A stretch of 64,000 nt of DNA from Pelomyxa schiedti (lineage: Eukaryota > Protista > Evosea). This document shows, piece after piece, positions 20,377 to 58,300 of this stretch. The stretch is from contig JAHLWZ010000859.1 in NCBI GenBank assembly GCA_020536535.1, positions 6,447 to 70,446 of the forward strand, given 5' to 3'. The notes under the pieces are model-generated. The model saw only the letters and a list, made by a program, of their open reading frames with translations. It searched no databases and was not told where the DNA came from. Position 1 is the stretch's first letter. The number at the start of each line of letters is the position of its first letter. The translations under genes and the position numbers were made by a program.

Positions 20377-22900
20377 CTAGCTGTAAAGTGAGCCGCCAAG
20401 TTCGGCACGGGGGCAGACGTGCAGAATGCTGCGGTTGTGCATAAGTGCGTCGATTAGTTCGGTAAGAGTCGGAGCGCGAAGGAATCCGGGCTTGCGGCTT
20501 GTTTCGCAGGAATACCTTTCCGCGGTGTTGGCAAAGGTCAGGCGCTGAATCCTAAGGAATGATGGTTATTAAGCAGGAACTGACTTGGGAAGAGTGGGAA
20601 GCGGAGGAGGAGGAGAAGAAGTTGCCTGCGGTGGGTAGTTACACCACCACGCCGCCTGGACATGGTGAAGGGCTCTGTCCCGGGATTACTGTTGCTAAGT
20701 CGAATTAGGAATGTTCCGTCGTCTCTGCCTGCAAGCCAGAGGTCAGCTTCTGCTTTTGAGGCATCAGGCATGAACCACCTGGTTAATTCGATCATTCATA
20801 AAATGTTAAAAGGGAATCGCAGGTGTACGGTTGGTCAATGGCGGTTTCCATCTTTTTGGTGTTTAAAGATAAAATAAAGGATAGGATTCATACCTCAGCC
20901 ACAATAAACAAGTTTTCAGGAAGATAAAACGCTCCAAACCATTTTTCTGCCATGTTGAATTTGGCCATTGTTACTGCCCCTTCCTCTATTTTTTTTTTAA
21001 ATTAAAGGTTTGGACGTACAGATGTGTACCACATAGAACGGCACTAAGTTTGGCAAAATTGGGGCCAATTGTAGTCTCTTTTGAAACAGCAGTACAAAAT
21101 TCTTCCCAGGCTACTGACTCTTGCAGCCCGCCACTTTTCTGTAGGAAAGAATAAAAGTTCGTCAACAAAGTTGGCACATACGCCAACTGAGCCAAAGTGC
21201 TTAGACCAAAAAAGTCTGCCTGAAGGGGAGTCTATCTGACTTTCCAGCATGACAATCTCCAATTGAAGTAAAACTTGAGAGATAGATGGTCGCTGCCATT
21301 TTATTAGGACCGTTCTGTAAATGAATAAAGAAACGAACCTTAGCAGGATTGGCATCCCAACAAGAAGTGATGAGTTCGGACTACAAAGGATTAGAAGAGA
21401 GTCACATGTACATGTTAAATCACCATGGAAGGAAGAGTGGGTATGGAGGGTGGAGGACCGTCTCTCCAATACTTGTGAGGTACTGTTGCTGGGATAGGCG
21501 GTCTTAGTCCACCAACGATTACATCTCTATAGAAAGGTTCCAGGTCAGTGTAACTACTGAACGATTCTTCCTCAGTATAAATCTCCCACAAAATATAGCC
21601 GAGAGCATAGCTTGTGAAGAATGAAAAATGTGCTATTTTGCAAAAGAGAGATGTAGTCACATGTCTGAAGCAGTGGTTGCAGGTTGTCCAGCCCAAATCT
21701 CTGGTGCCAGGTAAAGTTCTAGAGTGGATCAGAGGACAAATATTCTCCAGAGTTACTCACTTGTTCCTTTCACGTTTTTCGTTGTACGTTTATCATTATA
21801 AAATTGACTGAACCCAAAATCTGATACCTGCCAAAAAGGTTATAAAATAAGTATCTTTTGTCTTGTTTTGATAAAGAAACCTTGACTCGGAAGGACTCAT
21901 CAAGAAGAAGATTTGCTACAAAGCATCACAAATGGAGAAGGGGAAAATCTAACGGGAAAGGGTACCAGGTTTAAGGTCTCGGTGAACGATATGCAGAATG
22001 TCATGGAGCCAATTGATTCCAACAACCTATAAGTTCTGTTAAATCATTTATGGAGCAATTGTATGTACAGCATCATGAGCAATCTTTAATTTACGCCAGA
22101 AACTGAGGACAGGGTCAACATATTTTTTGAGTTCAGGGGGTACAGCTGCTGGCTTTCGAAGAACAACGTCCACATCACACACCATTTTCTCTAAAACAAT
22201 CATCACATTCCCTTCAGCAGTGCAAGCACCTGTGCACAAAATGTTGGAATGGGGAATGCCAACCTAAAAGAAGGAAATACCCAAGAAAAGAACGACGTTG
22301 GTGTGGAAAATTGTCCTGTACGTTGTTGAAATGAAGCCCATGGAGGAGGCAAAATTCAAACCTCAAAATTGCCACTTCTTCCCTGAAAAGAGCCAGTTCT
22401 TCTGGGCTGGACCACTGTTGCTTTTTCGGAACTTTAACAGCGACGTGAATGCCCTTCAAAACCGCTGAAAGAAGACACCTCGTTGTTAAGGTTTAACTCA
22501 AAAGGGAAAGGCATACCTTTGTACACATCTCCAAAGGCACCCCCACCGAGTTTATCCGTTGCTGGGTTGAACAGAATTTCTGAACGTGGTATTTCCGGTG
22601 GCCCTGCTCTGAGGTCATCGACCTTGAAGAGAAAAGTAGGTTGCTCAGTATTGAAAACGAGCAGCAGTGGAACGACACACAGCCTTGCGCGAAAATAACC
22701 CTTTCTTCAACATGATAGCCCAAGCAAGGATCGGTGCCCTTTGTGTTTCCGGAAAAATAAAAAAATGTCAACCGAAAGCCTCAGATGGAGGGGAAGCAGT
22801 GGAATTGTGCCACTCAATGACATATTGGGCAGAAGCTCTTTGCTCAGGAGAGAAAAACCAAGTTAGGAAGCTAAGGGCAAAGAATAGGGTAGTCGATTCA
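20377..22900 (-). CDS. TKL protein kinase with C-terminal SH2 domain (Dictyostelium SHK-type), copy 1; start uncertain
   Basis: GGGAFGDVYKG, VAVKVP, FREEVAIL, IVHRDLKPANLL and DFG; SH2 WFMPDASKAEADLWLAGRDDGTFLIRLS; stop at 20377. Confidence 0.9.
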
Positions 22901-23051
22901 TAAATTGATCTTTTTCACTGGAAAACTCGGGGTACGGAACCAACAGAAAAAGAAAATCAAATGAGCCAAAACAACAACAAAAAAAACCGTAAACGTTGAG
23001 CGGGTGTAAAAACTCCAAAAGAAAAAATAAATAAAAACCCAAAACAAGCAA

Positions 23052-26000
23052 ATGGCAGACGAGGCCGTGCGATTTGGTAGCCCCTTTGTGTTTGTGGATG
23101 TGAAAAACGAGACAGAGGATATCTTTCAAGACGATGTGGAGGACGGTATTGCTGCATGTGCAGCTGAGCAAGCCAAGCTTTGGGCTGAGGAGGCGAAGGC
23201 GCAAGGGAAAGACCCTGCTTTCTTACGTGAACTCCTATCGTTGACAAATAGCTTAGCTTCCTCTGGTACACTTTGTTCGAACATCTCTATTACTTGTTGC
23301 CATCATTTTTTTGACACTTTTTTTTTTTTGTCACCATTTGAGTGCTGGTAGTAACTATTCGTTGCAGGCAAGCCTAGGTCTGGTGCTATGGGTACAACTA
23401 CGAGAATTCAACCACGTTTCCAAAAGGGAAAGCAGGCTGAATTTGATACCCGAGCCAAACGAGTGAGGTTTCTTCCTTTGTGACTTCACTTTACTGTTTC
23501 GTAGGTTGAAGAAGAGGAGAGGGAGAAGAGAAAGGCTTCCTCGAGTAGAGCGGAAAAGCTGAGAGCATTCGCTCTTGAAGAGGAGGCTAAGGCCTTAGCT
23601 GCAAAACCCTCCACTTCAGCTTCTGTTGTAACTGAAACGAGCACCTCTGCTGCTCCCCCACCCCCACCGCCACCGCCGCCACCTGGTATGGGTGATGAGG
23701 TTCAGGCTCTTGTGATCGAGCTTGGCAGTTGGTATGTCAAGGCTGGATTTGCTGGTACCTCCCATTCATTTGAGGCAGTTCAGTTGCTTAAAAAAAACAA
23801 GGTGATGACGCTCCAAGAGCTGTGGCCCCAGCTATCGTTGGAAGGCCAAGGCACACAGGTGTAATGGCTGGAATGGGAAACAAAGATGCGTAAGTCTCTT
23901 GCCCGTAGCTTTTTTTTATAGTTTACCTTTGATAGTTATGTTGGTGATGAAGCACAATCAAAGAGAGGCAAGATCTTTGTTTATTTCTTCTTGAACTCAT
24001 TTCTATAGGAATTCTAACCCTCAAATATCCTATTGAACATGGCATTGTTACAAATTGGGATGATACAGAGAAAATCCTTCATCATTTTTTTTACAAGTAT
24101 TCCCCAGCTTCTCCATAATTTCTTACTTAAGTCAGTGAATTGCGTGTTGCTCCTGAGGAACATCCTGTGCTCATGACAGAGGAACCTTTTAATCCTAAAG
24201 CTAATCGAGAGAAGATGACTCAACTACTTTTGTGTGTCACTAAGTTTGTGATGTTTACTAATGGATTCAGTGAGACATTTAATTGTCCAGCAGTGTACAT
24301 TACCAGTGCCCCACTTCTTGCCCTTTATGCTGCTGGTCGTACAACGGGTATAGTGCTGTCCCTGGGTGATGGTGTTTCGTATGCTGTTCCAATTTATGAG
24401 GGTGCTGTCATTTCTCACGCTGTACTGAGAACCTACATAGGAGGCCGTGATTTGACAGATTATGTACTGTTTCTGTATCGTTTTCGTCAATCTGACATGA
24501 AATTAGATGATGAAAATTTTAACGGAGCGCGGTTACTCCTTCACAACAACCGCTGAAAGGGAGATAGTAAGAGATATTAAGGAAAAATTGGCGTAAGTTC
24601 CTAAAATTATTGCATGAACTCTTATTTCCAAAGATATGTTGCTCTCGATTTTGAGGCGGAAATGGGAACAGCCGCAGCCTCCAGTTCTCTTGAGAAGTCT
24701 TATGAACTTCCTGATGGACAGGTTATCACGCTTGGTAATGAGCGATTCAGGTGTCCCGAAGCACTCTTCCAGCCATCTTTCATCGGAATGGAAGATACAG
24801 GAGTTCATGAAATGCGTAAATCGAACTCCATTGTATCCAATCTACTCATTCAAAAACCAAACAGTTTTCAACGCAATTTATAAATGTGATCCTGACATTC
24901 GAAGTACACTGTTTGGGAATGTTGTCCTTTGTGGCGGATCTTCAATGTTCCCCGGAATCGCTGACAGACTCCAGGCGGAATTAACAAATCTTGCTCCTAG
25001 CACGATGAAAGTGAAGATTATTGCACCTCCTGAGAGAAAGTACAGTGCGTGGATCGGTGGCTCCATTTTTGCCTCTCTTTCCACATTCCAATCTGCCTGG
25101 ATATCCAAAGAAGACTATGATGAATCTGGCCCTGGTATAGTTCATAGAAAGTGTTGGGAAGGTGGTAGTAGTGAATGTATTACACCAAGTCTCATATCCA
25201 CACTTCCCACTCCCGCATCTACCCCTACCTCTACCACTGGATCTATGTCCATTGTCTCCCATCCAGCTACCACAACGATCCCCTCTGCAGTCGCAAGAGA
25301 GAGTATTTCTACTGCTGCCGCACCTACGCCTACGCCCACTCCCACCCCGGCGCCAAGGGAGAAAACGAACACAATTGCGAAAGTGAAACCTCTCTCTGAC
25401 ACCAACTCAATGATGGTTCGTATTGGCACATTAATTGACGACCACTCAGCGCAACTGGTTGCAGGGAGGCCACTGGTGTGTTCCAACTGTGGTGGTGTTT
25501 TCAATACATACAGCAAAGTTGCTTCTGGCTTCTGGGGGTGCGAGTTCTGTGGCACGGGAAATGTTGTGCCTCCAGGAACCCCCACTTTTACGCAACCCCT
25601 GGTCGAATTCTCTCTCAGTGGAGCTGCCACTGCAGGAAATACTGAGCACATGATCGTTTTTTGTGTTGACGTCAGTGGTTTGTACCCTTTTCTGCTTTTC
25701 TCTCCCCCTAATCCACCTCAGGATCAATGAATACCCAGATCTCGGTTCCGTCAGGAGTCCGGCTCGGTGGTGAAGGACCTTCACGCAATACTGTCACTCG
25801 ACTAGAATGCGTGCAAGCTGCTGTTTCTAGTCAAATACGCGCTCTTGTTAAGCAAGACCCAACAGCTAAAGTGGGCTTGATAGCATTTGGTTCAAATCTC
25901 ACGCTCTTTGGTGACGGTACCTCATCACTTATGGTGGAATCTGGTCTCGATGACTACGATGCTCTTTTGAGACGTGCACAGGAGTTCCGAAGTCATTACA

Positions 26001-28362
26001 GACATAATGTGGATGAAACAGCCCCAGCTTTAGTAGAACACATCTCCCGCCTTCAGGTGGGAAGTGGCACAGCCTTGGGTCCTGCACTGGTTATGGCTGT
26101 AGGCTTGTGTGAAGGGTACCAAGCATCAAGGATTATCCTCTGTACAGATGGCCTTGCAAACGTTGGTGTTGGATCAATGGAAGATACTGGTGTGTACTCT
26201 GTTGCAGAAGAGGTGGAATTGGATCTCGTTTTTATTGTGGATTGTACTGGAAGGTATATCTTACACCGGCCTTTGTGTACACTAACACTGCTAAGCATGG
26301 GGTCTTATATTGCAGAAGCCCAAAAGAATATTAAACTCATCATTGATAAGATTATATCATCCGAAAAAGCAAACGTTCGAGTGGCCTTTGTTTCTTACAG
26401 GGATCACCCGCCGCAGGACACATGTAATTTCTTTCTCCCCCTTCCCCTCTAACCCTTCTACAGCCTACATTACTCACCTGGATGATTTTACCTCCTCTTT
26501 GACTGAAATGAAGCGGGCCGTTGATGGAATGTCTGCAAGTGGTGGTGGTGATACACCCGAAGCTGTAGCAACAGCTTTGCGAGATGCTGCCAAACTTAAG
26601 TACCGACCTAGTGCAACTAAGGTGGCAGTTCTTATTACCGATGCCCCTCCGCACGGATTGGGAGTATCTGGAGATGGTTTCCCCAAGGGGGAACCGAATG
26701 GAGTTGATCCCCTCTCAGCTGTTGACCAGATGGCCGCTCAAGGAATTGCACTCTACTCAGTTGGCTGCCAACCTGCCATTGGCCAGTACTTATACACAAT
26801 TGGGTTTATGCGTGCAATTGCTGCTCGTGCCAATGGCAAGTACGTTCCTCTGGAAGATGCCTCCCTTTTGAGCAATGTTATTATTGGTGGTTGCCGTGAA
26901 GAGCTGAGCCTCTACCGTAACGCCCTCACCATATTGGACTCAATGAAGGCCAATGGTGGTAGTGCAGCCAAGGCGGTCGAGGTTCTTAATGCAAGCGGGA
27001 CCAGAATTACTACTCTGAAGTTTGCTGATCCTGATATGGAGAAATTTTCTTCCGAAGTGGCAACAATCGTATCTGCTGCTGATCTTCCAGCTGCCATGCG
27101 AGAACTCTCTAAACGGAGACGATCTCCCATACCGTCAGCAGTCAAGGCTGGCGTCACTGTTGCAGGTTTCATTCATATCACTCCATTTACCTTGTTCTTA
27201 CTGTGAAAAGAGGGAAGCCCACTTACAGCAGATCATGTTTTGCGGGTGGTGAAAAAGTACGGAAGCAAGTATGATCAACTTGTACAGGCTGTACGCGATA
27301 TAGAGGCAAAGAGGCTGGCTCGACAAGAAAGTTCCACTCAGGATGCAGATGTATTCTACAGACGGGTGGCCATGGCTGCCAGAGCAGCTGGAAGTACAGT
27401 TTCTGTGCTCACAATGGAGGGTGAGGATTGCAAGCTTGAAAATCTTGGCGTGGTTGCCGACGCCACCAACGGGCAGGTTGTCTCTTGCCCTTGTCACCCG
27501 CCCCGCATTCCTTCCTCTAAGAAACAACAACTAGGTGGATGTTGTGGACCCCGTCAAGCTGCAGGAGAAAGCCGAGCAGCTTCTCCGCCGAGAAGCCAAA
27601 GCCATCGAAACCAAGATCGCCGTCCACTTTGGCAAGCACGTCGCGTTCCTCGCCGAGCCGACCGACGTCGTGACGCCGTTCGCGGTCTCCCGCGAGCTGG
27701 GCATCGTCACCAACGACGCCGACATCACCTTCGCCTACGGGCCCACGGAGACCGCCACCACGACGCTGCGCGCGGTGTCGGCGACCTCCGGGGAGCCGCC
27801 GGAGGACATGGTCGACCTGCCGTTCCAGGTCGTGCTCGAGTGGACCGACCCCAAGACGGCGACCAAGAGCATCAGGGCGCTTTCGGCCCGCCGCGACTTC
27901 GCGTGGGACCGCGGCCGCTGCGAGGCGTACATCGACAGCGCCACGGTGGCCGTGCGCGCGATCCACGCGAGCGCGGCCATGGCGCAGCAGGGCAAGTACA
28001 CCGACGCCAGGATCAACCTCGTGTCGACCCTGCGGCTGCTGCAGCGCACGCTGACGCTGGAGCAGCACTCGAGGGACTACATGTCTTTCGTTGTGCAAGC
28101 GGAAAAGCTGGACGGCTTCATGCGTGAGGCCATTGCTGCTGAGCAAGTAAGGCAGACAACAACTGGAGACCGCAGCAAAACAAGGGATGATGACGCCAGC
28201 AAGGTAAACAACTAAACCACACCTAAACTACCAAAACAACACCAACAACAAAAATAACTGCAGCACCACGCCTTTCCTAACGTCCACTATCTCACCATTC
28301 CTTAACAGGCCATGTACCAAATGAAAGCAGTCAGCTTGAAGGCATTCCAGAACCGAACGTAA
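23052..28362 (+). CDS. multidomain fusion: charged helix - Pro10 - actin - Sec23/24-type Zn finger - vWA (with inserted second vWA) - C-terminal beta/helical region
   Basis: About 17 exons join in phase from [15 protein letters not shown] to [16 protein letters not shown]. The actin C-terminus HRKCW continues without a stop into EGGSSE... inside a single exon (ORF 24636-25730). Confidence 0.9.
23688..25157 (+). other. complete actin domain within the fusion gene (8 introns)
   Basis: [30 protein letters not shown]...[29 protein letters not shown]...[12 protein letters not shown]...[20 protein letters not shown]...[32 protein letters not shown]...[17 protein letters not shown]...[14 protein letters not shown]. 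Confidence 0.98.
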
Positions 28363-28511
28363 CCAGACCCCATAGCAGCAGAAAAAAAAACTTGTTGTCA
28401 TTGTCTCACTTAATTCTGTTATTCGTTTTTTCGTTTGCAAACGGTGGCTTCCTGTTTCCATTAAAAACCACAGTCATCAAACCCCCGGCAGCTACAGACA
28501 GGCGTCCATCG

Positions 28512-52077: not shown

Positions 52078-52857
52078 ATTGATTTCGCTTTGAAGGATGT
52101 GAAGGCGAAACGGGGGAACTAGAGATGACAGCACAGGAATGCACAATTGCTCCCAATCCCATACGTCAGTCAGATTTTCCATCCAATCAAAAAAACAAGA
52201 AACAAAAAGAAAACAAATAATGAAACAAACAAGTTGATACCGTCAGTAAACCTAACCGCATACCGGTATGCAACAATCCACATACCAATACGCGCTATCC
52301 TCCTTGCTGTTTCTTGTTTTGTTTTTTTTTCTCATAGGTTTTTTTGTGGAGAATCACGTGTCATCAAATGAGGGGGGCGTGGGGTGCTAGGCGTGTTTTG
52401 GCTACAAAGTTCTGAGGTGTCACGTCTCTACTATGGCGTGATAGCTGCACTACTTTAATCCCCAGCCTCACACCCCCCCAAGCCAAACTTCCATACAGAT
52501 TCTGGAAGTTTGTTGGAGTTCGCTGGAATCAAAAAGTTTGTCGCTCAACTGGTCAATATCCCGCAGTTATAGTCGATGCAAGTATTTCCTTCTCCACGGT
52601 CAAAGAAACACCCGTAGTCCACCACATCACGCTGTTTGTTTTCTAAGAGACTCGAATCACATGTATCTTTGATTCTCTGTACCCGATCGGTTTTTTCCGT
52701 TTTTACGTGCTCATTCTGTGAGTGGCGGCGATGAGGGCGGCGCTTGGGGTGACGTCGCACCCTCTTTTTCCTCTTTCTTCCTCTCTCTTACTTTAAATAG
52801 AGCTCCAGGGCCTCGGCATCTCGTGGGTGTTTTTGTTTGTTTGTTTGTTGTTTCCTG

Positions 52858-55236
52858 ATGTTTTGCAGCCACACAAACCAAGTTAAATGGGCGCGTGGTG
52901 AGTTTATCTGTTTCCCTTCACACTATCAAGCCAACTTTACCACAACAGAAGCAACGCAATGTAAGTCGTATGCCACTGTGATTTTTCTAATTCTTCCCCC
53001 CTATCAGGTGTATATTGTACGAGTTTGGTCTGCATCGTCTTCAGTAATCCTATTTAAAAGGTTCCGAGATTTTAGTAGTCTCTATGAAATTGTGGGCATT
53101 ACTCTTAGCTTCTTAACTCAAAAAAAGTAATTCCACCTACAGGTTCAACGAAAGTTTAGGCACGCCAAAATTCCACACCTCCCTCCAAGACACATTATGG
53201 GGCTTACTGATATGGACGCCTTTGAAGCTAAGCGTGTGCATCAGTTAGAAAGCTTCCTCAAGACTATTGCTTTGCTCCCCAATTGCTTCAATATCCCAGA
53301 GGTTAAGGGGTGGTTACAAGAGCATAGTCCACGATCGAAACCAAAAGTATCAAGCTATTCCCACAGTAGAAATGTAAGGAAAACAAGGTGTCAGATGGCA
53401 ACAACCAGGTTGGAATGCAGCTGATTAGTAAATGCTCAGAGCCTACTCTCGACCTCTCTGGAGTCAAGTTCAACTTCGATCAAGTAGAAATCTCCCACAA
53501 TAGATCTCATATTTCCCCTTACAGACTTCTAGACCCACTTCAGTGAAATTCAAAACCTCGTTTTCTTAACGAACCTGAATCTATCCTTCAATTTGATGCC
53601 ACTGTTCCCTGACCTCACATCCTTGATTAATCTTGAAACCCTTGATGTGAGTTTCAACCGACTCACTTCACTTGAAGGCATTGGTGAGTTGAGATCCCTC
53701 AAGGTGTGCACCAGAATGTCTTACTTCATCAGAAATTTGACTGCCCTTTAAAGCATCTCTTTGTCTCGAGCAACCGTCTCACTCAGATTTCTGAGGAAAT
53801 TGGAAATCTTTCAAACCTAGAGCTATTGCACTGCTTTAATAACGAGATCAGTACCATAAACGCCGCTTTGGGGCGCTTACAGAATCTCAAAGATTTGGAT
53901 GTCAGTGGAAACCCCTTAACAGAGCTTCCAAACGAAATTGGTCACTGCACAGCCCTAGAGGTTAGGGAAGACTTATTCAAGTCTTCTTATTCAATATTCA
54001 GTCCTTGAACGCCAGTGATTGCCATTTGAGTGAACTGCCGCCTTCCATTACCAATCTAAAGCGTCTCTGTGTTCTGAATGTGTCAGACAACTTCCTGTGT
54101 TTTCTTCCTTACGATATTGGACACTTGACACGGTTCCCTAAACTTTATTTTTGCCTTTTTTCCCAATTTTCCTTAGGTTGTGCAGCCTTAGTGTGGCGGA
54201 CAACAGATTAGGAGAATTACCGCCTTCCTTATGGTATCTCACATTTAATCTGCCTTTCGTTCCCCTTTATGCATCACCTGCACAAATTGAACGTTACAAA
54301 CACCAAGATACAACAGCTTGTGCAAGCTTACAGTGCAATTTGGAGGCAATGGCTTGATTCTCTTTGGGAATAATCTCCCCAGTGAATTCATGCACAGCTA
54401 TTCTCTTGGAGTAGAAAAGTTATTCAACACCTTGAAGGGAAAGCTATCCACTCAGCCACTTCCTCCACCGCCACAGCCGCCACCGCTACCGGTAATCGCG
54501 AAGCCGGCCTCACCACCCCCCCAAACGCCACCTTCGCCTCCACCATCTTTCTCTCCCCAATTGCCCCCACAACCGCAGCAGGTCACAATAACCAAGGCAC
54601 AAGCACCAAATGAATTTACCCCTTTAGCTGAAAATCTCAACAGCATTGTTAACACTCTCCTTCAGTGGGTTTTGTGTGTGGATTCTGTACTGCTCACGAA
54701 TTTAAAATTTCAAAAGATTCTTGCTGTAGGCTACACTGTCTCCAACATTCTAGAGGTGCAACCCTTGTTCCTTTCCCAAAACCTAATGTTTCTTCCTTCA
54801 GTGCGTACAAAAGGCACTTAGGATTGTACCTTGTCAGGCAACATATCTCCCACCAGATACATTCAGACAAATGGTGCATGAGGTTTTACTTTGCGAGTCT
54901 GAGGCCACAGCACTAGCGTCTCCCAAATCAAACAGCAATACGACCTCCAACACTTCAGCTGCTCCCAACAGCCCAACTTCAATGCCACCCACCGGCAACA
55001 GCAACAACAGCAATTCAAATTCGAACACAAGCTCCCCCACATCTCCACACCTTAGCAAACTATCCAGTGTAGTGCAGTCCAATGCTGCCTCACTCAGAAC
55101 AGCATTGACCTCATTGAGTTCATTCTTCTCTGATGTTCAATCACTACCGGCACACACCCTCATTGAGCTCAACAACACACTTTCTCCTTCCATCATTCTT
55201 GTAGCCTCCTGGTTGTCCGTTCAATCTCTAACTTGA
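52858..55236 (+). CDS. PX domain + leucine-rich repeats + proline-rich protein
   Basis: PX: VYIVRV...FKRFRDFSSLY...IPHLPPRH...EAKRVHQLESFL; multiple LxxLxLxxNxL repeats (LQNLKDLDVSGNPLTELPNEIG); QPLPPPPQPPPLP. Confidence 0.85.
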
Positions 55237-55301
55237 GCCGAAACACCAAGAGGAAAAATAAACTAAGTTTCAAATTTCGCTCTATTCTTTCAAATGGTTG
55301 A

Positions 55302-58300
55302 CTATGTTCTGCCACCTTTTGGTTTTACTGTCCCTGGTTTGAGAGTAGCCAGGTTTCTTGCGGATTGTGTATTTGATGTGGATAGTGTGGGAGAGTTGGC
55401 CGAGTTTTCAGAACCGCTACTGTTAAGAACAGGTTTGCTTTTCTGGGGTCCGACATGAGCTTTTTGTACTTGGGAAGCGAACTGAAGTGCACTGGAAATT
55501 TTCAATTAGTTTAAACAGTATATTAAAGAATCTAGGAGTACTTCAGAGTGTGATGTAAGTCTTTTTGAGTGGGAGATACGGCAACAATCATAAGAACTTT
55601 CGCTGTGCCGGCTATTAAGATGGGTCAGTTTTGAAAAACCTATAGATTCCGATACTGAGGAAGTTTTTTAGGTATCGAGTCAACATGCAATCAGCGAAGG
55701 GTACATATTTTGCGTTGTTTTCTACGAATACTTTGAGAAACGAAGAACGGAGTGAAGAGAAGTACTTATTGCACTGATTACAGTGATTAGGTGTGACAGA
55801 GATGCGTTAATTGTGGCTGCTTCTTCTTTCTGTTTGCCTACAACTTCACTTTCGTCAAGACGCTCACATCCAGCAAGGTCTATAAGATTCAAAGTGCTTT
55901 CATAAGACTCGTGTGAAACTGCGTTATTGGCCACAATTTTAAGCTGAAATATACTTGGTAGAATTAACTTTTTGGATTGAAAATAGTATGTTTCTGTTAC
56001 CAATGTGATCTGGATGAATGTGCATTTACAGCTGTAGGTGCTTGTGCTCTGTTTTGGTATGCAGCACGGAGCAATTCAAAAACTTGTTCTGGTGATGATA
56101 CTTCCACTGGGTTGCGTTAGCTGACTATAGAAGGTGAAACGAGTGTAAATGTTGAGGGGTGCAGTGTTGACCTGATGCTATGTCAGGTTTTAAAGTTTTG
56201 TGTTCAGGAGTTTGGGGAGGAACGACCCTTTTTGTAAGGTCACGAACTTTGTCCATATAAATCTACAATTTTGTCACCAGCAATACAAAGAAAGGGAAGA
56301 AAACCTCTGCAATACTGACATACAAATGGAAATCCCACCCATAGGGGGAGAGAGTTGCGATACAGCCAAAAATCTGGTCCATGGCCCGTGGTATTATACC
56401 CCTTTGCAGCCAAATACTGGAAGGAAGGTCCGTTTTTGATCTAATGAAGACCTCTGGTGGGCCTTCCATGGTATATGTCTTCCCACTCCCGGTTTGCCCA
56501 TACCTGTACAATGTTAACCGAAATTGATTGGAATAATTCCTACGCAAAGAGACAGCAGTTGTATCCGTCAAGTACACTTTGGATAAAATCAGAGGCAACA
56601 TTTTGAAAAACTATTTCTTGGGATGTCGTAGGAGCCAAAACCTTGGAATGTAAAGACACTCTTAACAAAGTAGTACATACATAGTCAAACTTAAAGTTGA
56701 CCGGTTCCAATCGAGTTTCACCTTTCAAATTTTGCTTTTTTATGGCATAAGTTAGAGTGGAACTGGAAGATGAAGAATACAAGTGGTTTTAAGACTTGAA
56801 GTTCTTCATTACCGGCTGGAATAGAAAATTGGATAGGAATTTCATTTTCTGTTCGATATTAGCGACCAGCATGAAATGCCACATGATACCTTGTACTTTT
56901 CGAATTCGACATACAACTCGAATATTTCCCTCAAGGTCTTGTATTCTATTGTGCATACTACGTCTCGTCCGCTCCCACTGCAGTGTCTTTTCTGTGTGAA
57001 GTTTATGCCTCTCCTCAATTTCAGCTGTATATCTTGCACTGCACGCTTCCAGTTCTCTCTTTTGCTGCTGTTTAATACACTCAATTTCCTGGTTATGCTG
57101 CTCAATTGTGTGCGTCATTTCACTTTGATGAGCCGTAGTGAGAGTTTCTAGTTCTTCACTGTGGTGCTTGGCCTGCTCAGCATATTGCTCCTTCAAGTGC
57201 TAAGGATAATAGATCAGTGAGAAATAGGTTTAGAAAATTGGGTAGATACTTGCAAAGCAGTATTTAGAGATTCAATGGCTTGTTCTTTTTCTCCAAGGAC
57301 AAGAGTTTGCCGGTCATATTTTTCCTTTATTTACATTTAATCCTTCACAAAAAATGCAGGTAAAACCTCCAATTCCCTCTTTGATTTTGCGGCAGCTCGC
57401 AGTTCCACATCTTTTTCCTTCAAACTGCTTCTTGCAGAGTCTAAATCAGCTGTTAATGCTGCCAGCTTGGATTCAAGGAGAGCCATGTGATCTCTGAGTT
57501 TGGATTCCAATGTGCCAGCATGCTCCTTATTCACTCTGAGGCGATCATCTTAACCTATTAGAGGGAAAAACTGCAGGAAACGGATAGACCTCTTTCCACA
57601 AGTGACTTCTCCAAAGTCCTTATTTTCTCTTTAAGAGTAACTTCAGCGGTTGGTTGCCTACAAAAAGATTAGTTTGACCGATTTTTGAGTGATTTTTGCC
57701 TGAGGCAACCTGCTAAGGGGAGTAGCTTCAGTGTTAGGTGGCCTACTTAGTTTAGGAGCAGGTTTCTTGGCCTGCTCAACAATTGGTTTCTTGGCCTCAG
57801 ACACAGGCTTTTTTAGCTGTACCTCTACTCTCGCTTTCTTCCCAGGTGGTTGATAAAGTTTGTTGTGATAGGGAGTTGTTTTCCGCTTGCTAACAGCAGC
57901 TGTGGTACCTGTAGTGCTTGTGCTGGGCTTGGTAGTACTTTTAGCTGGTGGCTTAGACCCTGTTGTGCTGGACTGGCGTAACCCTGCAATACGAGATTTG
58001 CCAAATGGCAGACTTCCTGTGCTACTTGTAGGAACGAGGTGGTTTCGCCGGTTGGTCACTTGAATAGGTTTGGTTGTAGGTCTAGCCTTGGATGAGTGTG
58101 CCGCACTTGTCACAGGTTTTGGTTTTATGCCAATTTTTGGCATTTGTGTGGGATTCTTAAGAGTAGAATTTTTCATCTTGTTTGCTACAATTGGCTTTGC
58201 TGCTGTAGACTTCTCAGCTGAGGGAACAGGAATGCCAGATGGATGTTCCTTAAGAGAAACAGACTTGGGGGAAGGAATAAATAACTAATAGATAAACCTA

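Follow-up and report, generated by a model that had tools for sequence, protein, structure and literature searches.

The analyzed window is a 64,000-nucleotide stretch of Pelomyxa schiedti DNA (contig JAHLWZ010000859.1 of assembly GCA_020536535.1, positions 6,447 to 70,446 of the forward strand), and its element of interest is a gene on the + strand that joins a complete actin domain to a zinc finger and vWA tail. The encoded protein, KAH3745758.1 (P0153), is named "actin, cytoplasmic 2" in GenBank. It does not have the free-standing form of ~375 amino acids: 164 residues precede and 956 follow the actin domain in one reading frame, and the parts come in the order conserved N-domain, tract of ten prolines (Pro10), actin, linker, Sec23/24-type zinc finger, and a vWA domain into which a second vWA is nested (Table 1). 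No stop codon follows actin residue 375, and the exon at 24865-25677, which holds the actin C-terminus (..IVHRKCW), is continuous. Within this fusion, the actin domain combines replaced catalytic residues with conserved polymer surfaces.

Table 1. Features of the fusion gene in the 64,000-nucleotide window (window coordinates)
Feature	Position	Strand	Details
Whole gene	23052..28362	+	17 exons, 1495 amino acids (exact spliced mapping of KAH3745758.1); 12 of 16 introns seen as joints in RNA contigs
Conserved N-terminal domain (KAH3745758.1 residues 1-110)	23052..23525	+	common to the whole fusion family; motif alignment
Charged helix and Pro10 tract (Pro10 at 23652-23681)	23526..23687	+	from translation; immediately 5' of actin
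Actin domain, 375 residues, nine exon segments	23688..25157	+	ATG at 23688; Pfam Actin (PF00022), E=4e-135; 80.3% identity to own conventional actin
Phosphate loop 1, ELGSWYVK vs DNGSGMCK	23718..23741	+	E11 23718-20, L12 23721-23, W15 23730-32, Y16 and V17 23733-38, K18 23739-41; covered by a spliced RNA contig without differences
D-loop region, residues 38-52, one intron within	23846..23936	+	canonical; only Q42G vs own actin
GC-AG intron of 41 nt, within the actin domain	23968-24008	+	joint seen in RNA contig
Q137A and A138P	24308..24313	+	residue holding the hydrolytic water, and its neighbor; A137 24308-10, P138 24311-13 (alignment, codon positions)
Phosphate loop 2, SLGDGVSYA vs DTGDGVTHT	24359..24385	+	S154 24359-61, L155 24362-64, S160, Y161 and A162 24377-85; covered by RNA contig 24346-24463 without differences
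W-loop AVIS vs YALP (Y169A, A170V, L171I, P172S)	24404..24415	+	altered barbed-face groove
Read-through after ..HRKCW and low-complexity Thr/Pro/Ser linker	25158..25469	+	same exon as the actin C-terminus
Sec23/Sec24-type zinc finger	25470..25574	+	Pfam PF04810, E=7.7e-7, above gathering score
Outer vWA / Sec23-trunk-like domain, N-terminal half	25650..26221	+	Pfam PF04811 and PF13519
Second vWA, nested in the first	26222..27161	+	Pfam PF00092, E=1.5e-19; KAH3745758.1 residues 880-1047
Outer vWA C-terminal half and family-specific C-terminal domain	27162..28359	+	spliced RNA contigs in 3-4 runs

The DNA of the window is eukaryotic and has many introns; in the three + frames of 23000-28400, the actin-coding segments lie between introns of 39-49 nt, eight of which interrupt the actin domain, one of them being GC-AG. 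Since these short introns split the gene, the actin part was modeled from GT/GC-AG boundaries and motifs were read from the spliced model, which is identical to residues 165-539 of KAH3745758.1. Gene searches were run exon by exon, the joined model was used for local alignment only, and full-length steps used KAH3745758.1. RNA evidence came from contigs of four single-cell RNA sequencing runs of one sample. In these contigs, 12 introns including the GC-AG intron are removed exactly as modeled, and the codons of phosphate loop 1 and of D154S/H161Y are matched. One contig starting at 23596, upstream of the actin ATG, passes through the Pro10 region into the actin exon. The DxSxS motif (DVSGS) of the metal ion-dependent adhesion site (MIDAS) in the outer vWA is split by an intron at 25678-25721, for which RNA contigs from two runs give evidence. 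The P. schiedti gene is real and transcribed.

Compared with the conventional actin of the same organism, the fused domain shows 74 differences in 375 residues; as there are no indels, its numbering equals that of rabbit alpha-actin. The replacements include D11E, N12L, G15W, M16Y, C17V, Q137A, A138P, D154S, T155L, T160S, H161Y and T162A, and the 134-139 block around Q137 is also altered, so that the invariant actin set D11, G15, Q137, D154 and H161 reads E, W, A, S and Y. Among five external free actins, four carry the full DNGSGMK..Q..D..GDGV..H set, and the fifth (Rozella) is gapped at G156 and D157 in the alignment. With residues classed (cleft, faces) from general actin structure, 7 of 14 phosphate/catalytic sites are changed vs 42 of 221 unclassified sites (Fisher p=0.012), and the adenosine pocket is changed at 1 of 11 sites, with R210, K213, E214, G301, G302, M305, F306 and K336 intact. 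G13, S14, K18, G156 and D157 are likewise retained. An original prediction, made from the sequence of the window alone, had read D11E, N12L and G15W in the first phosphate loop, together with Q137A, D154S and H161Y, as selective losses in a probable pseudo-ATPase. All six replacements are found in the spliced model on the + strand, and phosphate/catalytic sites carry an excess of changes. The retained motifs it had listed, among them the D-loop and QPSFIGME, are all present; its span of 23688-24400 lies within the actin domain and covers the first 167 residues only.

Cryo-electron microscopy work attributes the holding of the nucleophilic water to Q137 and its activation to D154 and H161; Q137A alone slows hydrolysis and does not abolish it (PMC9646518). 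In human beta-actin, the combination Q137A, D154A and H161A leaves no appreciable ATPase activity, and nucleotide binding, polymerization and profilin affinity are kept (PMC6867828; PMC9646518). Because the fused actin has all three positions of this triple mutant replaced, a loss of its ATP hydrolysis appears well supported. The triple-alanine precedent (PMC6867828), the hypervariability of these positions in 41 fused relatives and their loss, to other residues, in the two Mastigella proteins of the same fused clade, described below, all favor the probable pseudo-ATPase of the original prediction. For nucleotide binding by the fused actin, G13, S14, K18, G156, D157 and the adenosine pocket speak in favor, and W15, E11 and L12 speak against it.

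The Pfam match of the actin domain covers profile positions 1-409 of 410 and shows no Arp-type insertions. An AlphaFold2 (AF2) model of the actin domain, based on a 45-sequence alignment, reached a predicted local distance difference test (pLDDT) value of 90.2, and its comparison with G-actin structures by Foldseek gave template modeling (TM) scores of 0.97-0.99 at a root mean square deviation of 0.6-1.0 Å, i.e. the canonical four-subdomain fold. On the pointed-end face (D-loop, 61-65, 200-208, 241-247), only 1 of 36 sites is changed, whereas the barbed-face set (143-148, 166-172, 283-294, 322-325, 341-355, 371-375) is changed at 15 of 49 sites, including Y169A, V287P, K291S, M355A and F375W (Fisher p=0.0014 for the difference). 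The suggestion that the actin surfaces remain near-canonical therefore stands for the pointed face, where 35 of 36 sites agree, and does not extend to the barbed-face groove.

Comparison with the conventional gene shows strong purifying selection on the fused gene outside the cleft. Identical residues share their codon in 28% of cases, where codon usage alone predicts 29%, and the GC content at third codon positions is 0.35 in the fused gene vs 0.81 in the conventional one. Since synonymous sites are saturated while the protein is 80% identical, we conclude that the gene is under purifying selection and has undergone neither decay nor recent gene conversion. The protein windows 51-75 and 201-225 are 100% identical to conventional actin. 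Gene conversion from conventional actin was considered as the source of this mosaic identity and rejected, because synonymous sites are at chance level in every window; it is also countered by the eight introns of the fused gene, which the conventional genes lack. Conventional actin is encoded in the genome by at least 20 identical genes, each with a single intron, and there are ~40 divergent actin paralogs.

The fusion belongs to a widespread family. An exhaustive profile-free search with the last exon recovered 291 tail relatives at E ≤ 0.001, the long ones of which carry an N-terminal actin, and a word search with KAH3745758.1 added many more. At least 41 proteins combine a full actin domain with the zinc finger-vWA tail. 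Named sources are P. schiedti (2 genes), Mastigella eilhardi (2), Mastigamoeba balamuthi, Balamuthia mandrillaris, Pyxidicula operculata (2), Copromyxa protea, Paulinella chromatophora and a Polykrikos kofoidii transcriptome, whose member could stem from prey contamination; the rest come from environmental assemblies. The family thus spans Archamoebae, Balamuthia, Tubulinea, Paulinella, the Polykrikos transcriptome and environmental transcripts. Primate POTE-actin proteins were also among the word-search matches, and they were neither selected nor used in the family comparisons. When the zinc-finger portion of the junction exon was used for a word search, there were no matches in the detectable length range, which is uninformative as the relatives are longer, and look-alikes of the last exon in the ESM Atlas only lead to Vwaint/vWA clusters.

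KAH3745758.1 follows the family order of N-domain motif, actin, Sec23/24 zinc finger, vWA and family-specific C-terminal domain. A conserved N-domain of ~100 residues precedes actin in nearly all members, in some with a WW domain in between. An alignment of 38 N-terminal extensions revealed the conserved motifs EDI[FY]..E[VI].DGIA.CA.EQA..WA and GAMGT.SRLQPRFQKG; this domain of KAH3745758.1 has no Pfam match. In a quick maximum likelihood tree, the fused actins cluster, and KAH3745758.1 falls together with both Mastigella proteins into a 30-sequence fused clade (SH-aLRT 97). A single clade for all 41 fused actins was not rejected and in fact gave the better tree (p-AU 0.73). The same quick tree places the fused domain within the conventional-actin clade, apart from the most divergent paralogs. 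The comparison with actin and Arp families envisaged in the original prediction hence returns an actin with 80% identity, no insertions and a position inside the conventional clade.

A second P. schiedti fusion gene, annotated "actin 11", lies elsewhere in the genome (G000:C562, ~52250-56260, +). This paralog shares G15W and A138P, has Q137N and G13S, keeps D11, D154 and H161, and is without the nested vWA and without an annotated N-domain. Downstream of it, at ~56490-56600 (+), an open frame starts with the N-domain motif NDEIEDGLAACAKEQAAVWAQ, and no actin was detected after it; this frame may represent another gene with an N-domain, or else a first exon that has been displaced. A different actin fusion was seen in Balamuthia and in transcriptomes, namely proteins of ~1800 residues with TIG, BRCT, NACHT/AAA and TPR parts and an actin at the C-terminus. 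The actin of the Balamuthia protein groups, in the quick tree, with the Balamuthia member of the zinc finger-vWA family.

Across the 41 members, Q137 is kept in 5, D154 in 4, H161 in 19, N12 in 3, G15 in 17 and D11 in 24. All three of Q137, D154 and H161 are kept in only 1 member, at least one is lost in 40 and all three are lost in 17; P138 is the commonest state in the family. In the adenosine pocket, R210, K213, E214, G301, G302 and K336 are near-invariant. At positions 11/12/137/154/161, the residues are E/L/A/S/Y in the gene of the window, C/P/A/N/Q in one Mastigella protein and C/P/N/S/F in the other. Sharing of the substitutions by orthologs, the comparison proposed at the outset, accordingly applies to the positions lost and not to the residues found there. 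Because the replacements are heterogeneous across relatives, the catalytic positions appear free to vary and not re-tuned.

To describe this pattern without prior residue classes, we used an entropy contrast between the fused family and 20 free P. schiedti actin paralogs. The largest excess variability in the fused family was found at F375, T160, G158, V159, N12, T106, D179, D11, G15, E107, R177 and Q137, with F375 as the most variable site; these excess-variable sites fall in both phosphate loops and the phosphate exit region and include the catalytic Gln. The largest excess conservation was found at M47, M44, H40, G46 and N49 of the D-loop, at Q59-K68 in subdomain 2, and at K191-I208 and E241-Q246 in subdomain 4. 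Class conservation gave a similar picture when fused members with at least 65% identity were compared to free paralogs with 55-80% identity: values were 0.55 vs 0.76 (fused vs free) for catalytic sites, 0.80 vs 0.49 for the pointed face, 0.83 vs 0.67 for the barbed face and 0.76 vs 0.55 for lateral contacts. The median number of changed catalytic sites was 7 of 14 in fused actins (60-86% identity) and 3 in free paralogs (62-92% identity; p=2e-5, uncorrected for shared ancestry). Together with the saturated synonymous sites, the entropy contrast and the class means support, at the level of the family, the earlier proposal that selection kept the actin surfaces. Many free P. schiedti paralogs are also without Q137, D154 or H161, and D11 is kept in 26 of 26 readable ones. 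Catalytic decay thus occurs outside the fusion as well, and the fusion stands out by pairing it, at high overall identity, with conserved polymer surfaces.

Considering these data, we regard it as likely that P. schiedti produces a transcribed fusion of 1495 residues in which a complete actin domain without ATP hydrolysis serves as a non-hydrolyzing actin module. Such a module would remain in one nucleotide state, or in none, and would not undergo "ageing". Its conserved surfaces would dock on conventional actin, as a terminal or an incorporated subunit, or on actin-binding proteins; we infer this engagement because the filament-contact residues are conserved. Docking would tie the vWA/MIDAS tail to the actin cytoskeleton, and since both termini of actin are located at the periphery of the filament, the domains on either side could extend outward. 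For the paralog in the window, the intact pointed face and the altered barbed groove would fit a subunit that adds to the barbed end without supporting further growth. A barbed-end cap is not supported as a reading for the whole family, in which the barbed face is conserved in the mean (0.83); the asymmetry is confined to the window paralog. When the fused actin domain and conventional P. schiedti actin were co-folded in silico, the score was 0.30 (mark 0.34), which speaks neither for nor against binding. As a tentative extension, the actin-zinc finger-vWA proteins could be natural "ageless" subunits that evade the nucleotide clock by never hydrolyzing ATP, copolymerize with filaments or cap them by way of the conserved pointed face and lateral contacts, and thereby plant a vWA adaptor with MIDAS at defined positions.

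Several points weigh against the proposal of a non-hydrolyzing module. The family comparisons are not phylogenetically independent, and the residue classes do not derive from coordinate distances. As free paralogs often lose Q137 or H161 too, part of the decay may be a trait of the lineage. W15 and E11 may block nucleotide binding, which would give a nucleotide-free and not an ATP-locked fold, and the hydroxyls of S154 and Y161 could in principle still hold waters. The barbed groove is altered at residues that contact the D-loop and profilin, which makes normal copolymerization doubtful. Finally, no RNA contig of the one sample was seen to cross 24629-24990 and none was seen to join the actin part to the tail, although holes between contigs are not proof.

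Among the alternatives, a nucleotide-free fold is rather unlikely and has the most in its favor. Here, G15W, D11E and N12L would abolish binding and leave an actin-shaped scaffold whose adenosine pocket is conserved for folding only. A bulky Trp occupies the position whose backbone amide contacts the beta-phosphate; N12 is lost, and so is D11, which all readable free paralogs keep; and G15, G158 and V159 are hypervariable in the family. On the other hand, non-Gly residues are tolerated at the position equivalent to G15 in other members of the actin/Hsp70 superfamily, and the retained G13, S14, K18, G156, D157 and the whole adenosine pocket are found in the gene and in most of the family. The engineered triple mutant also still binds nucleotide (PMC6867828).

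It is unlikely that the domain is a monomer mimic or decoy that never enters filaments, and whose G-actin surfaces attract or tie up actin-binding proteins (of the DNase-I-like, WH2 or gelsolin type, for instance) or bind the N-domain or tail intramolecularly. The fused C-terminus and the altered barbed groove of the window paralog would suit such a role, as would the variability of F375 across the family and the conserved N-domain directly upstream. It is countered by the family-wide excess conservation at the D-loop, 61-68, 191-208 and 241-246, which are longitudinal and lateral filament contacts, and by the family mean for barbed-face sites. That the protein is still an ATPase using substitutes, with E11 for the metal and the S154 and Y161 hydroxyls for the water relay, is very unlikely: the replacements E, S and Y are polar and the slowing effect of Q137A alone leaves some room for it, but the three positions together abolish activity in beta-actin (PMC6867828), and many unrelated residues occupy them across relatives without any conserved alternative catalytic set. 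It is extremely improbable that the gene is a pseudogene, a chimera of the assembly or the product of an annotation that reads through from actin into an unrelated neighbor, since against the plain GenBank name and the RNA gap within the actin domain stand a stop-free exon that holds both the actin end and the linker/zinc finger, an open frame of 1495 codons, saturated synonymous sites at 80% protein identity, and the same architecture in complete transcriptome open reading frames of several species and in the second paralog of the same genome.

The actin superfamily offers partial parallels to the proposed non-hydrolyzing module. Arp7/Arp9 and Arp10/Arp11 are actin-related proteins with degenerate or non-hydrolyzing nucleotide sites, and filactin of Dictyostelium and Entamoeba is a natural actin fusion. 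The Arps and the free P. schiedti paralogs resemble the fused actin in keeping the actin fold and giving up ATP turnover (with Q137 or H161 lost in free paralogs). They are, however, much more diverged and have lost filament-contact surfaces (free paralogs: pointed face 0.49, lateral contacts 0.55), whereas the fused family keeps both. The fused domain is no member of Arp1-Arp11, as it is 80% identical to actin, is without insertions and falls among the conventional actins. POTE-actin of primates, the NACHT/TPR-actin proteins and filactin use actin as one module, as is the case here, with different partner domains; to our knowledge, no report describes in any of them conserved polymer surfaces alongside catalytic residues lost throughout the family. 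An experimental precedent is the beta-actin triple mutant of 2019 (PMC6867828), which has the same three positions replaced and, like the fused actin, keeps the polymer surfaces as well as the adenosine pocket. In contrast to this mutant, the fused actin is natural, carries the additional D11E/N12L/G15W and barbed-groove changes, and is part of a 1495-residue protein.

The tail corresponds to that of the cpRAS-VWA proteins, in which a four-cysteine zinc finger is followed by a vWA / Sec23-trunk and the nucleotide-binding domain is N-terminal; no function is known for them (PMC2430557). The fused protein shares this zinc finger and vWA/Sec23-trunk tail (PF04810 and PF04811 above gathering scores). 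The N-terminal module is a circularly permuted Ras GTPase there and an actin here, and KAH3745758.1 has no GTPase or Ras-family Pfam match. Elias and Novotny 2008 (PMC2430557) do not mention actin. KAH3745758.1 is no Sec23/Sec24 subunit of the COPII coat either, since its matches, both weak (29.5 and 32.7 bits), are confined to the zinc finger and the trunk, and its Pfam scan gave no Sec23 beta-barrel, helical or gelsolin match. Among open papers, the literature contained no description of an actin/vWA/Sec23 fusion or of its dead site, and those on Pelomyxa and actin do not mention fusions.

Further observations concern the tail and the surroundings of the gene. One RNA contig (run X2) skips 103 nt within the nested vWA (window 26729-26833) with non-canonical AT..CA ends, which may be an assembly artifact or an alternative form. 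At window position 27105, a single RNA contig, from run X3 (depth 8.7), differs by C>T, and the other runs show the genomic C. A stand-alone paralog of the nested vWA with 57% identity, and with no actin or zinc finger nearby, was found in the same genome (G000:C831:49236-49967) and is a possible source of the inserted domain. Upstream of the gene, on the minus strand at window ~21400-22460, open frames resemble protein kinase fragments by eye.

These findings bear on how actin entries are read, since database sequences labeled "actin, cytoplasmic 2" or "actin 11" can turn out to be fusions of 1100-1500 residues with dead active sites. The fused domain is a probable pseudo-ATPase of the actin superfamily, but one that keeps its polymer surfaces and is part of a conserved multi-domain protein. 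The ATPase of actin is regarded as inseparable from its polymer function, and the catalytic residues do not vary among free conventional actins. The fusion family would represent a natural counterpart of mutagenesis, i.e. an actin of high identity in which the hydrolytic residues are gone and the filament surfaces are constrained. It thereby offers a system for asking what an actin subunit does without a nucleotide clock, and it also bears on what zinc-finger/vWA tails of the cpRAS type attach to. If true, "ageless" subunits would be an undescribed way to mark or anchor actin filaments, common to several amoeboid lineages.

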